Shown in pieces: positions 9,969 through 17,793 of a stretch of DNA of 48,726 nt. The notes under the pieces were generated by a model, which made no database searches, was not told the origin of the DNA, and saw only the letters and a list, made by a program, of their open reading frames with translations. Location of the stretch: assembly GCF_000315625.1 (NCBI RefSeq), contig NW_005434599.1, forward strand, positions 254,424 through 303,149, read 5' to 3'. Position numbers and translations under genes: made by a program. The DNA comes from Guillardia theta CCMP2712. Lineage: Eukaryota > Protista > Cryptophyta. Each line of letters opens with the position of its first letter. The stretch's first letter is position 1.

Positions 9969-10255
9969 AGCTTCCGGTAAGGCTCCGACCGATTTCGACC
10001 TATATAGGCCCCCGGTCAGCCGGTTACATTTTCCACCGATCCTACCGGTGTCCGTTATCGTGCGGCGCAAACCGTCTGGACAGGCTGTCCGGGCCGTCCG
10101 CGCGGCTGCTCAGTGGGGTGGGCGCTACTAGGCCCGCCGCTATGAGTCAGCCTGCTCCGAACTTTACCGGGACTCAGCGCGAGGCACGTGTTGATACTCT
10201 GACACTTTACTCAAAGTTAAGTTAATTTTCCCTTTTGATTCACCCCATCCTAACC

Positions 10256-10434
10256 ACATGGCACTCGGCCTTGTGGCTGCTGCTCACTAGGATACCGGGC
10301 CTCGCCTTGGCTCTTCAGACGTCCGTGCAAGTCATCTCCAACGAAAATACTAGAGAGCAACTTGGCAAGGCATAACAGACACATTTTGTACCCCTAATTC
10401 TGAGGCGAGCTCGGCATACGAAAAGCGCGACCCT

Positions 10435-10470
<36 letters not shown>

Positions 10471-11190
10471 CCTGCTCCTCCTCGTCCTCCTCCTCCCCCT
10501 TCCTCTGGTTCTTACCTGAGGTCTCGCGCTGCACCCCTCCTTGTCTGTCCCTCTCCTTCCCTCCTCCACCTCTTGTCTCCACGTGCTCTCCTCTCCTGTG
10601 CTCACCTCGTAGTGTACTGACAATGCGACCAACAACTCTCACCCTCACGTCTACGTCCCTCCCAACCTCTGGAACTGTACCGGAGACTACGCGAGGTAGG
10701 CCAACTAAGTTTTAGTCTAACACCATTAAACCCCACCCTGTCAATTTACATCGAGTTTCGCTGATTTCACGTTAACCATCTCGCACGCAACATGTTGGAT
10801 GTTGCTTTCTCGCCAGCCCCATCATGATGACGTCCAAGCAGAGTCAAAGCTGCAGCCTCACGCGTCCTGTCCATACATCCCACTGCACGAACGGATCTCA
10901 TTCGTGGTGTACTCGAAGCACCTTGAGAACACTTCAGTATGCTACATGTGTGCCGCACGAGCTTCCAAGATCAACTCACATTCCGATCGAGCATGTATCA
11001 CAGGAAACAGGACAAGCTTGGGATGCCGGCACTCCAAAGGCGTCTACGTCATCGTCGCAATACCTGCCCCAAGATTGTTAGGCACAAGCCATCGATCGAG
11101 GCTTGCACTTGCCCCATCCTTTTTGTCCAATCGGCATACACCTCACAACCCCCATACCGTGATCTGAAATCATATCTGTCCCAAGGTCAA
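10256..11190. repeat. Mosaic duplicate: copies of 12385-12474, about 4546-4617, 5396-5513 and 6378-6942 joined in series
   Basis: Direct sequence identity to four separate loci in this window. Confidence 0.92.
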
Positions 11191-11731: not shown

Positions 11732-12198
11732 GGCAAACGCCCCCTCGAACAGACAAACCGTTACAAAATGGAGATTCTGTAACCACTCAATTGAACGTTG
11801 AAATCGGTTACACCCTGCACTTTTATAAGGCTTTTTGTGGTCATCATGGATCATTCCACCCCACCCCTTCCACAGGTACCCCTACCTACCTACCTAGCTA
11901 CCCCTACCTCCTCTTTGCGGATTTCTTCTAGAGATCCACCTATATATACTACCCCTACCAGGTTGGATCATAATGAATGTTTGTACCCACCCCCTCCTTT
12001 CCTGTTTTGCACCCCCTAGCTAGTGTAACACCTCATACCACCCCGCCATGTCCCAACACGCAATCGATTACACCATCGTCACTACCCCTCATTTTCCCTC
12101 TTATTCACCCTTATGACAACCCTGTAGCCCCCACCCCACCCTACCCTACATGATTCTGTTGCTTCCCTTGAAGCGGGCCATCCCCCCCTGCGGCTGCC

Positions 12199-15100
12199 AT
12201 GGCGCACGCTTCGGCTGCGCTGGTCATGGCGCCGCCACCGCGGGGGCGCATGGAGGAGCATCCCCCGCTCCTGGATGTAGATTACGATCCTCCTCTCTCA
12301 CCTGTGGAGGAGCCAGCAGGCGTCGTGCTGCCCGATGAAGGTCAGCCTGGGGACCTCGATTCCACTGATCACGACACGCATGTAACATGGCACTCGGCCT
12401 TGTGGCTGCTGCTCACTAGGATAGGCCTCGCCTTGGCTCTTCAGACGTCCGTGCAAGTCATCTCCAACGAAATATGGATAGCTGAGGTAGCTCTTATGCA
12501 GCTTCAAACAGCAACATGCGACTGGTTCCACAAAGAAGACGTTGAATGCTTGACAATCAATGCATCGGACGAATGTGATAGAGCTTCAAACGCAAACACT
12601 CTCGAGGACTGTGAAATCACTCTGTCCAATGTTATCGATCGTTTCACTGCCACATTCCCTGCATATCCACCAACACCAGAAGAGCTTGAATTTATTGCTG
12701 CGAAGAACGATGTGTGGAATAGGGCGCTAAGGCCTGTGCTATCACTTTGCTTGTCGCAGCTTGTGCACATACATTGTCCCAGGGCCTTCATGGTGGTTCC
12801 GCTTATCACGCATCCCTTGCGTGTGGTTTCAATTCGATTGGTGCACTCGGATCTAGCGAGAGAAACTCCTAGCAAACTCTGGGACTTGTTGATCCTGTCG
12901 TTCAAAGGCAAGGACGGATCAAATCTCTTTTCTGGGCTGCTTCCCAGATTCTTTAGCTTTCTCATAATGGAGAGGATAAGAAAGATGAGAATCGAAGAAA
13001 GAATTCGACGATTCTTTCGTTCGCTTAGACAACGAAGGCATAGAGGCTTTTATGCAGAACAGGTGATTTCTGAACGCTGTATCAATTCTCTCTGACTTTA
13101 AGTTCGACAGCTGGAGAGGCTTGTTGCAGGTATTATAGACTTCTTGAGACTCTTTGCTTTGAAACTGACCTTGATTTTCGTTGCTTCTCACTGTCTTGGT
13201 TACAATAGGCTTGGTTAATGTGCTGGTGGGCACCTCCTTGTCGTATCCGCTCTGCGTCATTGAAAGAAGGATGAGCGTAGAAAAGAATTCTCCTCATCCA
13301 CTGTCTTTATTTCAATTCTTTCGGTATGTTTGATCTCTCGATTCTCCTTCATACATGACTGTGATGGGTGTAGGTACGTTGGCAGACAAATCCGGGGGGA
13401 AGGATTAGGTAGATAGTGTTTTTGACTCGACGTTTGCTTTGTTCACGATTGTCACAGGATCACTTTACAAGGGAATGTCTGCAGCTATGCTCATAGCAAT
13501 TCCCAAATTCTGTCTTCGCTATACTTCACGTTTGAACAAGGTTGTGTCTGAGTTAGGGACCGAAATCAAGCTTATTCGTGCCCAGGAAATCATGATGAGC
13601 TGGTTCGGAATACGATGGGGCTGGATACCGGTATTTCGCGTGTCAAGTGATTGTGAACTTCTGATTGAAAACCTTGCAGGTTCTCCCGGCAACAATCTTC
13701 TCAGCGATCAACGCTGGTCTCGTTCTTTCGACTCCTTTCTTCATTCGCGTGATTGATCGCAGGTCGTGCGAGACTGTCATTCCCATCTAGTCTTGCCGTT
13801 GTGGCTTGCAGTGTCGCAGCTCAGTGCCATCAGGTACCACAAGTTCCCCCACACTTCACGTGCTCTCTGACTTTCATGCAAGCTTCTGGTCGACCATGGA
13901 AAATTCCTCAACCGTCAGAGGCTGCTCAGGAACAGTGGTGATCGGGCACGGGCTCTCAGGCTGCCGCTTGTACGTTTCAGGTCAGACGACGTTCGAAGGA
14001 CCTGGTTCCGCATGGCGTACGGGAGCGATACGCCTGATCAAAATCAGATCGTCACCGAAGACGGGACCTTCGACTCTGTGGATGAAGTTACTGACAATCC
14101 CATGACGAGGGAGAGAGACGAAGATGTCAATGACATCTCAAACCAGTTAACGACAAGCTTGTCAGATTATTACAACGGTCCTGAGCATGCAGATCATTCG
14201 CCCAACTTCATCAACAAGATGCAGGCAATGAGAACCATGTACCTCAGGACTCGCAACTTCGCAGACCACAACCCTTTGTCCTTGGTGGTTGATCCAAATA
14301 ATGTGCTTGCTTCCACGTTCCTGCTGCTAGAAGCTATTCCTGCAGAGGTTGGCGATGATCTTGGAAGCTGTAATGCTGATCCTGAGAATCCAGGTCCTCG
14401 TCAATCGGCCAATTTTTGTCCGTCTAGAGGGGCAGGATGGAGCTGATTGGGGAGGAGTTCGTCGCTCGTGGATTGCAAGGTCAGCATGATGTGGGGAGTT
14501 TTCGCTCTGACCAGGGAGATAGAGTGGCGCAAGAGCTCTTCGATCCGAGGTTCGGCCTTGTGCTGGCTGTGTTTGGCAATGGTAAACGCGAGTCGCTTCC
14601 TTTTGCTGTGAGAATGACCCTGAGTGCGACGTGTAGGCGGGGAAGCGACAGGGAAGCTGATCATCAATCCAGCTCCGGGGCTGTTGTCTTATTCGGATGG
14701 CTCGCATGAAGCGGAACACGACTCGACTTGGAACGATCGCTACTACAAGTTCATGTCTGCCAGCCGATTGTCTTGCTGACCGAGAGCCTTACTGATGCTC
14801 CAGGGGGAGACTGATGGCCCTTGCGCTCATCTCAGGAGATGTGCTTGGAGTGAACATGGATTCCGCCTTCTACAAGTTTCTGATGATCCGCGACAACCTC
14901 AAAGTCATTGTATGAGCTGCCGCCCTCTCACTGGCTATATCCGGCAAGTCCCTGACTGTCCTGGGTTGCAGGCCTTTGCTCCCACGCAGATGAATTCAAG
15001 TGCAGAATGTGAATTCATCGCCAATCGTTACAAGCTCCGTCACATCATGGTCCTGCTCTCGTTCTCTTCGCCGTGCTGTCTGACAATCTTGACCTTTCAG

Positions 15101-17793
15101 GTTCTCAAGCTGATCAGACATCACCTGGCGCATTCGACGCCTGAAGGAAATGCTCTGAGGCGTATCATACGGAACATCTTTGACTCGAAGTTGTCGTGCC
15201 ATGAATCGGCAGAGGTGAAGGCGACGAACTGCTCTGCTTGACTCGCTGATCTCCTGGACTTCAGTTCATCTTCTGCGTGCTACACGGAAAGGAGAAACTC
15301 TGGGCCGACAAGAGGCTTCACAGCTTTCCCTTTCTCAATGAGTCAGAAAGTTTTGACGTTATGAGATGTGAAGACACCAGGAAGCAACTCACGACCATCC
15401 TCCTTTCCATCCTCTACAACAAGTTGAAGCAACGCCGCCGCCATGAGAGAGGCTGGGTGCTGGAAGGCATGCCGCATCGGAAGGTGAGCGGACAAGGCTC
15501 AAGGGCAGGGTTGACTGATAGCTGAACCCCGCAGGACTTTCTAGAGATGTTCTTCAGCAAAGGCGAGGCTTACCTCCCGAAATGTGCAATCATCTTCAAA
15601 CCAAAGAACCTGACCGTAAGCTTCACTCCTTGAATTGCCAACAGCCTCCCTCTCTTGAACGCTGGTGAGCAAGACGACAGGATTTCGACGATTCTTCTGA
15701 TATCTCCAAGTTGGTCTCTCACTCCAAGAAGTATGAGGTGCAGACAAGCAACCTCCATTCTCTCTTGAGGGCTGATGGTGTTCCAGGTCTACAATACGGA
15801 GTACCTGGCTCAGATAGGAAGTTTGATCAGCCTCACGAAGAAGTGGCAGGTCGACGATCCTTGTATTCTCAAAGCGCGACTGAAGCTTCAGTAGATTCCA
15901 TACTCGGTGGTCCAGTCGAGCCATTTCTGCTTTTGCTCGTTGCTGCGGAGGAAAGCACCAGAGAGTGACTGGGAGCAGGACACAGTCGAAGTTGAGCTAG
16001 ACGTGGAGATTGAAAACAAGTTTGCAACCACCCAGAGCAAGAGTCAGACTGAGACAGAAGAGGTCGACAAGCAGAAATCAGATGATATCAAACTGGACCA
16101 GAGCACGGGATGGAGCGAGATCGATTGCTGTGAGGCGAACTCAAGTTTGCAGGCAGAAAACTTCGAGCCCTGCGATCTTGTGCTCGAGGGGTCGAATGCG
16201 ACGATGATCCGACAGGATGCGGCGCATCTGCGGGCCCACGAGGTGCCTGGCGTGCTGGTGGTGGACGAAGGCCGATCATTTCACATCAACCCGGACGAGA
16301 CTCGTTGGGACCTTTTGAGCCAGCGCCGGTACGTTGACCCCCCACCCCCACCCCTCCACCTCAACCCTCCTGTGCGCCTCTCACTGCTTGTCTTCCAGAC
16401 ATTCTTCGCACTTGGGCGTAGATGACGGGAAGTGTCGGTACGGGTGCTCGAGCAGCCTGGCAGATTCTTGTCCCTTTCCAGGTACTGGAGCGAACCGAGA
16501 GAGAGGAACTGACAGACGAATGAGGGACTGAGAGGTGAGGGAGGCTGATAAAATGTGACAGATGTTGTGCGCGACGTCTATCAGTTTGTCGACTCGGTGA
16601 GATGGAGTGACGTGGAGCAGCCGGGGCTGGAGGATCTGCTGCAGTCGAACCCTGCGGAGTACTTCAAGCTCGGTGACTCGCCCCCGTTGCCCTGCCGGTC
16701 TGACCCGAAGCTCCAGCAAAGCTGCTCTCTCTCGGACGAGAAGACTTGCAGAGATGGGTTGATGAAGGACAGGTGCGAGCTCGTGGCCCTTGCTCATGGC
16801 CCCATGCCGGCTGATGCAAGCGTGTAGATGCGATTCGTGACAACGAGCAAAGAAGCTCGCGTTGCTCCCCTGCTGGGGGTCCCGATGTCCTCCCTTTCTC
16901 AGGTTGTGCCTGAAGTTCCGTGAGGAGCCTGGAAGTCACTGGGCGAGCAGGTTGAGAGTGAAGTGCTGGGAGGGTTCGGAGCAGACGAGCTGGTCGCTGC
17001 TGAGGTGCGAGGAGGTGCGGCAGGGGCGACGCGTGTGTGAAGTTGTCGAGCAGACGCTCAAGGACTACGTGGACCTGGTGTGCCACAAGGAGATGGTGGA
17101 GGATGTCACCGAGCAGATGGCGAAGGTGGAGAGACCTGGACGAGTCGCGGGTTGCTGACGTGTCATGTAGATACGGCAAGGGTTTCACGAGCTTGCTCCT
17201 CCCTCCATCCTCGGCAAGTTTCTCAATCCCCTCGGTGAGTCTCGTCGCTGCTGCTCGCGGCCTGACGTGCTTCGAGACCTCGAGAAGTGCATCGCGGGCG
17301 AAGCGCACATCGACGTGGATGACTGGTGCCTCGACGAGCCCAGCTGACCTCTAGCTGACCCTGCTGCTCAGGATGGCGAACAGCACGACCAAAGGGTTCG
17401 ACAGGGAGGCGCCGCAGCCTTCTTGGTTCTGGGAGTTCGTCGAGGAGAGCAACCAGAGCTGGCGGAGGAAGCTCCTCAGGTCTCTCACCCTCCCCCCTCC
17501 TTCTTTCCCTGACCAGCTGCCCAGCTGGACGACTGGGATGGTTCGCCCCCCCCCGGGAGGCTTCTCGCAGATGCCGCACGTGTTCACCATCCAGAGCGAC
17601 CCAGACCTCGAGCACCGCGACAGGCTTCCCGTCGCCCACACGTGCGGCTTCCAGCTGGATCTTCCGCTCTATCCCAGCAAGGAGGTGAACTAGAGCTGGA
17701 CTGTTGCTGAGCTTCTGCTGAGGTCTGTTGCAGGTGCTGGTTAGCAAGATGACGCTGGCAGTGGAGTACGAGAGTGACTTTCACTTGGTGTAG
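12199..17793 (+). CDS. Mitochondrial-carrier (SLC25/MTCH-like) repeats followed by a HECT E3 ubiquitin ligase; probably one fused gene
   Basis: Carrier motifs: HPLRVVSIRL...NLFSGLLPR and SYPLCVIERRM...QIRGEGLGSLYKGM. HECT motifs: IFVRLEGQDGADWGGVRRSW, ELFDPRFGL, GRLMALAL...AFYK, WFWEFV, WTTG and LPVAHTCGFQLDLPLY...DFHLV*. Both domain calls are strong; the fusion depends on my splice path. Confidence 0.75.

Follow-up and report, generated by a model that had tools for sequence, protein, structure and literature searches.

The forward strand of a 48,726-nucleotide (nt) stretch of the Guillardia theta genome (contig C75, positions 254424–303149; assembly of 87.1 Mb in 669 contigs), referred to here as the window, carries at positions 12199–17793 a gene in which a part resembling the mitochondrial carriers of the SLC25 family is followed by a HECT-type ubiquitin ligase part, the two being portions of one gene and not two. 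The gene model, verified by a script check of splice sites and reading frame, comprises 29 exons and 28 GT-AG introns and spans 1373 codons without an interrupting stop, from the ATG at 12199–12201 to the TAG at 17791–17793, both of which lie where an original prediction made from the DNA letters had placed them. We built the model from the splice path of that prediction and then corrected it against orthologues, and Pfam, homology and fold searches were run on single exons or on the unspliced open reading frames (ORFs) of the orthologues, not on the joined product. The region around the gene is characterized by short introns and a G+C content of ~52%, the 28 introns of the model measuring 42–80 nt (median 49) and opening with GTG (10), GTA (10), GTC (6) or GTT (2) donors. 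Several of the GTC and GTT donors stand at junctions that the alignment with orthologues fixes, 14755 and 15050 among them. The features of the gene, with positions counted from the first letter of the window, are the following.

Exon 1, 12199–13062, forward strand: acidic proline-rich extension, hydrophobic helix and EVALxxxQT block, first carrier-type repeat.
Exons 2–5, 13111–13129, 13209–13323, 13374–13408 and 13458–13630, forward strand: second carrier-type repeat.
Exons 6–7, 13680–13716 and 13763–13833, forward strand: two further hydrophobic segments.
Exon 8, 13883–14347, forward strand: linker motif, variable acidic stretch, start of the HECT N-lobe.
Exons 9–12, 14394–14479, 14523–14581, 14637–14754 and 14804–14909, forward strand: HECT N-lobe, first part.
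Exons 13–16, 14972–15049, 15101–15214, 15265–15483 and 15535–15615, forward strand: adenylate-kinase-like module within the HECT N-lobe.
Exons 17–20, 15681–15737, 15787–15849, 15895–16328 and 16399–16481, forward strand: acidic low-complexity rest of the insert.
Exons 21–26, 16562–16672, 16717–16772, 16828–16902, 16964–17125, 17171–17234 and 17277–17325, forward strand: HECT N-lobe, second part.
Exons 27–29, 17372–17479, 17525–17684 and 17734–17793, forward strand: HECT C-lobe with the catalytic Cys.

The unity of the gene is documented by its relatives. An exhaustive HMMER search retrieved ten homologues of exon 1, with P0002–P0010 at expectation values (E) from 1e-28 to 9e-8, and in the orthologous contigs, which either carry exon-1 homologues or were found via neighbours, the same gene is laid out as three large ORFs. 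The middle one is uninterrupted in L005:2510–4843, L007:10001–12001 and P0012–P0016; its start falls in the latter half of a carrier-type repeat (EGW...GKFSIRC), and from there it passes two hydrophobic segments and then the invariant, family-specific motif RLPLVRFRS..WF..AYGS, found in G. theta in the exon 8 linker, before entering a HECT N-lobe containing the stretches DPDDVLASTF, DWGGVRR, LFDPRLGLV, INPAP and LSGDPLGVNLDS. Exons 1, 3, 8–12, 15, 23 and 24 of G. theta map in order on orthologous contigs, L017, L018 and L020–L022 being colinear over the span of exons 1–24, and at least ten independent contigs hold genes colinear with the whole gene. The splice path proposed across the junction, which joins WIP, VLPATIFSAINAG, RARL...CHQ and LLVDHGK in this order, is likewise colinear with single ORFs of orthologues. 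In particular, exons 6–7 (13680..13833) encode two hydrophobic segments at residues ~403–442, with a hydropathy peak at 417–442, that are colinear with the stretch ...LMLPAAAAALAAG...WMECGALASCYKQLG... inside one ORF. Two other paths, with donor 13763 and acceptor 13811 or donor 13749 and acceptor 13824, are in frame too but were not adopted; the path first proposed for 13680–13833 was kept, since orthologue sequence can be aligned with exon 7 (RARLSFPSS...CHQ).

A second source of evidence is the metagenomic contig L001 (ENA ERZ930064, 2613 nt), which is 96.9% identical to positions 12034–14589 and served as sister-strain reference; its existence implies that a public metagenome contains a sister strain or species of G. 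theta. The two sequences differ at 78 positions, 26 of them in the 165 nt upstream of the ATG, 19 in 459 nt of introns and 33 in 1924 nt of exons. Since the exonic differences comprise 26 synonymous and only seven non-synonymous changes, the gene is under purifying selection, a bias apparent in exon 1 (12 of 16 synonymous) as well as in exon 3 (4/4). The stretch lying between the carrier and HECT parts (13631–13882) holds three differences, that is 1.2%, versus 16% in the upstream flank, and none at all occurs at 13649–13844; its appearance is not that of genuine intergenic flank. Exon 8 lacks an in-frame ATG before 14009, there being none in frame between 13599 and 14009 and none in any frame between 13599 and 13875. 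Yet in the HECT frame none of the five strain substitutions located at 13894–13996 alters an amino acid, whereas each is non-synonymous when read in either of the other two, an outcome with a chance of ~0.001 when 26% of the possible changes there are synonymous. Because these substitutions precede the first in-frame ATG, the HECT reading frame needs an upstream exon.

The comparisons with orthologues and sister strain also corrected the model. The intron that had been placed at 13938–13985 turned out to be coding: it encodes GDRARALRLPLVRFRS, the core of which is kept in all orthologues, and both strain differences within it (13975 and 13981) are synonymous. Its removal would delete RLPLVRFRS, conserved in every orthologue; for this reason, together with the silent nature of those differences, exon 8 is taken as continuous from 13883 to 14347.

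These data bear directly on the possibility that the locus comprises two genes, or transcripts that are never joined, with a carrier-like protein ending in or near 13788–13790 and a HECT ligase starting from the ATG at 14009. Such an arrangement would draw on intron 6 (13717–13762), whose retention leads to an in-frame stop at 13788–13790 in a frame that resembles the carrier signature. We regard it as very improbable, given that the junction is coded by a single uninterrupted ORF in the orthologues, that silent changes accumulate in the HECT frame ahead of any ATG, and that divergence at the junction is far below that of the true upstream flank. A related scenario, contained in the original prediction as its own refutation, would use an acceptor at 13980 and end at 14105; it was discarded, the strain substitutions there being non-synonymous in that frame. 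The claim of a single fused gene is thus upheld by the uninterrupted orthologue ORF and by the synonymous changes before the exon-8 ATG.

As regards the ligase part, a complete HECT domain with its catalytic Cys had been anticipated. Both lobes and the AHTC Cys are indeed there, but the N-lobe, present and colinear, is interrupted by an insert of ~380 residues that had been overlooked. Exon 12 matches the Pfam HECT profile (PF00632) at positions 44–72 (E 0.026), and the orthologue ORFs cover positions 35–75 and 73–160, colinear with G. theta exons 8–12 and 21–26, respectively; the second of these matches comes from L007:12265–14442, which aligns with exons 21–26 (E 8.6e-4). Exons 9–12 share 58–75% identity with the orthologue exons, and the orthologue ORFs bearing the first N-lobe part resemble HECT clusters in their language-model features (score 0.92). 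The C-lobe, encoded by exons 27–29, aligns with profile positions 204–288 at E 5.2e-17 and retrieves HUWE1, HACE1, AREL1 and WWP1 from the PDB at E 3e-6 to 2e-5. Its catalytic residue is Cys 1341 (codon 17643–17645) within AHTCGF, and a Phe can be read directly at position −4 from the C-terminus.

The insert occupies exons 13–20 (14972–16481) and starts with an adenylate-kinase-like module (exons 13–16, 14972..15615). The corresponding orthologue sequence L007:12265–13050 finds adenylate kinases in the PDB, 1zak at E 6.4e-8 and AK9 at E 1.3e-7, and matches the Pfam ADK profile (PF00406) at E 2.5e-5 with 24.9 bits, below the cut-off of 26.8, while the sole match of G. theta exon 15 alone is adenylate kinase 8 (E 3.3e-4). 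The Walker A motif (GxxGxGK[ST]) is intact in the orthologues (GPPKCGKT) and degenerate in G. theta (APTQMNSS), so that kinase activity is unlikely in this organism. Exons 17–20 (15681..16481) are acidic, low-complexity, stop-free GT-AG exons whose boundaries were set solely by reading frame and splice signals; in the orthologues a low-complexity, non-alignable stretch occupies the same place. A degenerate P-loop and long low-complexity inserts might be expected if the gene were a decaying or catalytically dead relic. However, strain changes are synonymous rather than non-synonymous by 26 to 7, the reading frame is intact across 29 exons, and neither the catalytic Cys nor the −4 Phe is missing, so decay of this kind appears highly unlikely.

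The N-terminal portion of the protein begins with an acidic, Pro-rich extension without evident presequence (residues 1–64), followed by a conserved hydrophobic helix and EVALxxxQT block (residues ~65–110). The first supported carrier-type repeat, at residues ~190–285, displays the signature HPLRVVSIRL and a GLLPRF helix; the second, encoded by exons 2–5 (13111..13630) with micro-exons of 19 and 35 nt, displays YPLCVIERRM and an EGLGSLYKG motif. That the sequence holds two SLC25-like repeats, as originally proposed, is supported by the orthologues. The ORF L015:733–1236, from a divergent orthologue, matches the Pfam Mito_carr profile (PF00153) over positions 7–84 of 96 at E 3e-7 and 30.5 bits, above the curated cut-off of 22.3 bits, and G. 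theta exons 3 and 5 match this ORF in order with pairwise E of 3e-9 and 1e-9. It also codes in one ORF, with equal spacing, the stretch for which a micro-exon at 13374–13408 had been postulated in G. theta, and so confirms that exon: L015 has RYAWELVKREGLAGMYKG, the G. theta equivalent RYVGRQIRGEGLGSLYKG being split over three exons. The first repeat scores just below the cut-off in the orthologues L014/P0005 (21.7–22.1 bits, E 1.2e-4 to 1.7e-4) and reaches 15 bits in L016/P0010. The profiles of the two repeats align with each other in register (hhalign, E 0.045), and the meaningful PDB matches of the family profiles are carriers only. In the canonical signature P-x-[DE]-x-x-[KR]-x-[KR], on which the matrix salt-bridge network depends, the Pro and the last Arg are retained, but neither G. 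theta nor any orthologue has the acidic residue of position 3 or the basic one of position 6, in accordance with the degeneracy noted at the outset.

Several points weigh against the joint reading of these parts as a carrier-type domain fused to a HECT ligase. Among the orthologue contigs fetched none reaches the HECT C-lobe, so that only G. theta shows the architecture in full. The splice junctions are predicted from sequence, above all those of intron 6 and exons 17–24. Mito_carr searches with single G. theta exons gave at best E 0.22 and 11.7 bits, at 13175–13330. The best PDB match of the first-repeat family profile, MTCH2, is marginal (E 0.013, 18.2 bits), the next being the GTP/GDP carrier GGC1 at E 0.24, and the L015-type repeat profile finds ADP/ATP carriers at E 0.15–0.6. 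Two repeats are supported, and not the three tandem repeats (six helices) of SLC25 proteins: with hhalign and a PDB profile search, the N-terminal conserved block matched neither repeat profile nor any PDB carrier. AlphaFold2 models of two orthologue pieces were of low confidence (predicted local distance difference test, pLDDT, 65.7 and 58.0; predicted template modelling score, pTM, 0.36 and 0.31), and with these models Foldseek against the PDB and VIA-align returned only generic long-helix matches, the carrier fold thus being predicted from sequence homology.

Taken together with the loss of the salt-bridge residues, the single-exon scores below Pfam significance, the marginal PDB matches, the unconvincing models and the undetectable third repeat could indicate a polytopic membrane anchor in the N-terminal part that has no kinship with SLC25 proteins and resembles them by convergence or chance. 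We consider this rather unlikely, since one orthologue repeat exceeds the Pfam cut-off over most of the profile, the other scores near it in three lineages, the only family-consistent PDB matches are carriers, and the predicted secondary structure of each repeat, although taken from low-confidence models, follows the carrier-compatible order of long helix, short helix and helix. The scores are each modest and point in the same direction, and the N-terminal domain is best described from its sequence as a divergent but real SLC25/Mito_carr homologue.

Two further observations concern this portion of the locus. Translation of intron 6 and the adjoining sequence (13717–13790) in the exon 6 frame gives AINAGLVLSTPFFIRVIDRR, which is carrier-signature-like and ends at the stop at 13788–13790; retention of this intron would yield a ligase-free carrier-like protein of ~437 residues. 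Moreover, 2 kb upstream of the gene, at 10255–10346 on the forward strand, lies a near-identical copy of ~92 nt, with one 3-nt insertion, of the exon-1 segment encoding the first hydrophobic helix (TWHSALWLLLTRI.GLALALQTSVQVISNE). The sister-strain contig matches this copy too, which could be either a pseudo-exon or the product of a small segmental duplication. Just downstream of it, 10354–10640 consists of low-complexity, alternating-codon repeats that read as Arg-Ser, Pro-Ala or Glu-Gln runs depending on the frame.

The closest named relative of exon 1 is a fragment from the cryptophyte Rhodomonas salina (EukProt EP00961 P122397). The family is thus found in cryptophytes, namely Guillardia and the Rhodomonas fragment, and in a clade met repeatedly in metagenomes from lakes and the sea, indicating that the gene is not a one-off assembly artefact. 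A word-index search returned only the sister-strain ORF for exon 1 and only the gene's own product for exon 8, and a search of the ESM Atlas with exon 1 gave no usable match. Within the orthologue clade, a gene for an adaptor-complex subunit (Adap_comp_sub) lies upstream on the opposite strand, both at L007:5245–7442 (minus strand) and on a 9221-nt ENA contig; as these are two different species-level contigs, local synteny is conserved in the clade.

Comparison with known systems helps to delimit what is new in this architecture. The likeness to MTCH2 and SLC25A46 lies in an SLC25-type repeat with a degenerate signature, MTCH2 reading HPFHVITLRSM...AGLVPRLL where the family reads HPLRVVSxRL...AGILPRxx. 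MTCH2, one of the proteins with which the degenerate signature was originally compared, is the best solved match, but at E 0.013 the protein is at most a candidate member of that subfamily. Whereas MTCH2 and SLC25A46 measure ~300–420 residues and have no enzymatic domain, the G. theta protein has two supported repeats, two added hydrophobic segments and ~930 residues of linker and HECT domain. Its C-lobe matches those of the soluble HECT ligases HUWE1, HACE1, AREL1, WWP1 and UBE3A (E 3e-6 to 5e-5), with which it has the Cys motif and the −4 Phe in common; these ligases have no membrane domain, and none among them is known to have an N-lobe split by an adenylate-kinase-like module of this kind (PMC3673628). 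With the adenylate kinases, including AK8 and AK9, the orthologue insert shares a P-loop and a GWVLEG.PH motif corresponding to GFLLDGFPR; it differs in being embedded in a HECT N-lobe and in carrying His, in every member seen, where FPR has Arg.

MARCH5 and MUL1 are membrane-embedded ubiquitin ligases (E3) with a cytosolic catalytic domain that act on outer-membrane proteins, and they provide the functional analogy that we propose for the G. theta protein, although they are RING-type enzymes with 2–4 simple transmembrane helices, no thioester and no carrier fold. PfUT of Plasmodium falciparum is a multi-pass HECT ligase of 3893 residues with an armadillo-like region, located at the endoplasmic reticulum (ER)/Golgi (PMC4022464). 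As such it sets a precedent, with a different anchor: neither carrier-type repeats nor an adenylate-kinase-like insert have been reported for it. A survey of HECT proteins in which G. theta was included makes no mention of an architecture with carrier, transmembrane or adenylate-kinase parts (PMC3673628), and full-text literature searches found no description of a carrier-HECT or adenylate-kinase-HECT protein, in agreement with the earlier statement that no carrier-HECT fusion was known. Judged from the sequences and the literature searched, the layout of this gene is a conserved HECT architecture previously undescribed.

On balance, we consider it likely that this single gene encodes a polytopic membrane protein of ~1373 residues, in which a diverged SLC25-type domain is combined with a HECT domain carrying an adenylate-kinase-like insert, and which probably acts as a ligase at an organelle surface. 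We infer its role in quality control, as well as its topology, localization, activity and substrates, along the following lines. Most likely the product would be an E3 ligase embedded in an organelle membrane. The loss of the salt-bridge residues makes a canonical exchange carrier unlikely, and the carrier-like domain would more likely serve as a membrane-embedded anchor or client-binding module, in the manner of the outer-membrane carrier homologues. Since a HECT domain needs ubiquitin and the activating (E1) and conjugating (E2) enzymes, the ligase is expected on the cytosolic face of the membrane bearing the carrier-like domain. The protein would then sit at the surface of an organelle with its ligase in the cytosol, where it could ubiquitinate membrane or membrane-proximal proteins. 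The adenylate-kinase-like module might participate in nucleotide sensing, its P-loop being intact in the orthologues and degenerate in G. theta.

As to the membrane concerned, the mitochondrial outer membrane would be our first guess. The MTCH2-like match and the analogy to SLC25A46, described as a member of the carrier family that resides in the outer membrane (PMC5328619), appear to favour this location. The same architecture might nevertheless reside in a non-mitochondrial membrane, such as that of the ER, the peroxisome or the outermost plastid or periplastid compartment, and would then function in ER- or plastid-associated degradation rather than in mitochondrial quality control. Peroxisomes and plastids, too, have members of the SLC25 family, and cryptophytes possess machinery derived from ER-associated degradation at their periplastid membrane. 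An acidic N-terminus without targeting signal, as read directly from the sequence, and the ER/Golgi location of the multi-pass ligase PfUT (PMC4022464) would fit such an assignment as well. The best solved match, though marginal, is a mitochondrial outer-membrane protein, and we therefore hold this alternative possible but the less likely of the two. A more elaborate proposal, which is unlikely to hold in all its parts, would regard this gene as the founder of a protist family in which the carrier fold sets a HECT domain in the mitochondrial outer membrane, its groove recognizes membrane clients in the way of the MTCH2 insertase, the adenylate-kinase-like module gates the ligase according to the local adenine-nucleotide state, and retention of intron 6 gives rise to a ligase-free isoform.

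With few exceptions, HECT ligases are soluble enzymes that adaptors bring to membranes, and the known E3 ligases of the mitochondrial surface are RING-type. If the interpretation favoured here, a membrane-embedded HECT ligase with an SLC25-type domain, is correct, a ligase provided with its own membrane domain of this kind would be a novel means of bringing thioester-forming ubiquitin chemistry to an organelle, and would add a further fate for the carrier fold beside those of MTCH2 and SLC25A46. Likewise, the adenylate-kinase-like module housed in the N-lobe may constitute a nucleotide-dependent switch, which would be undescribed for HECT enzymes.

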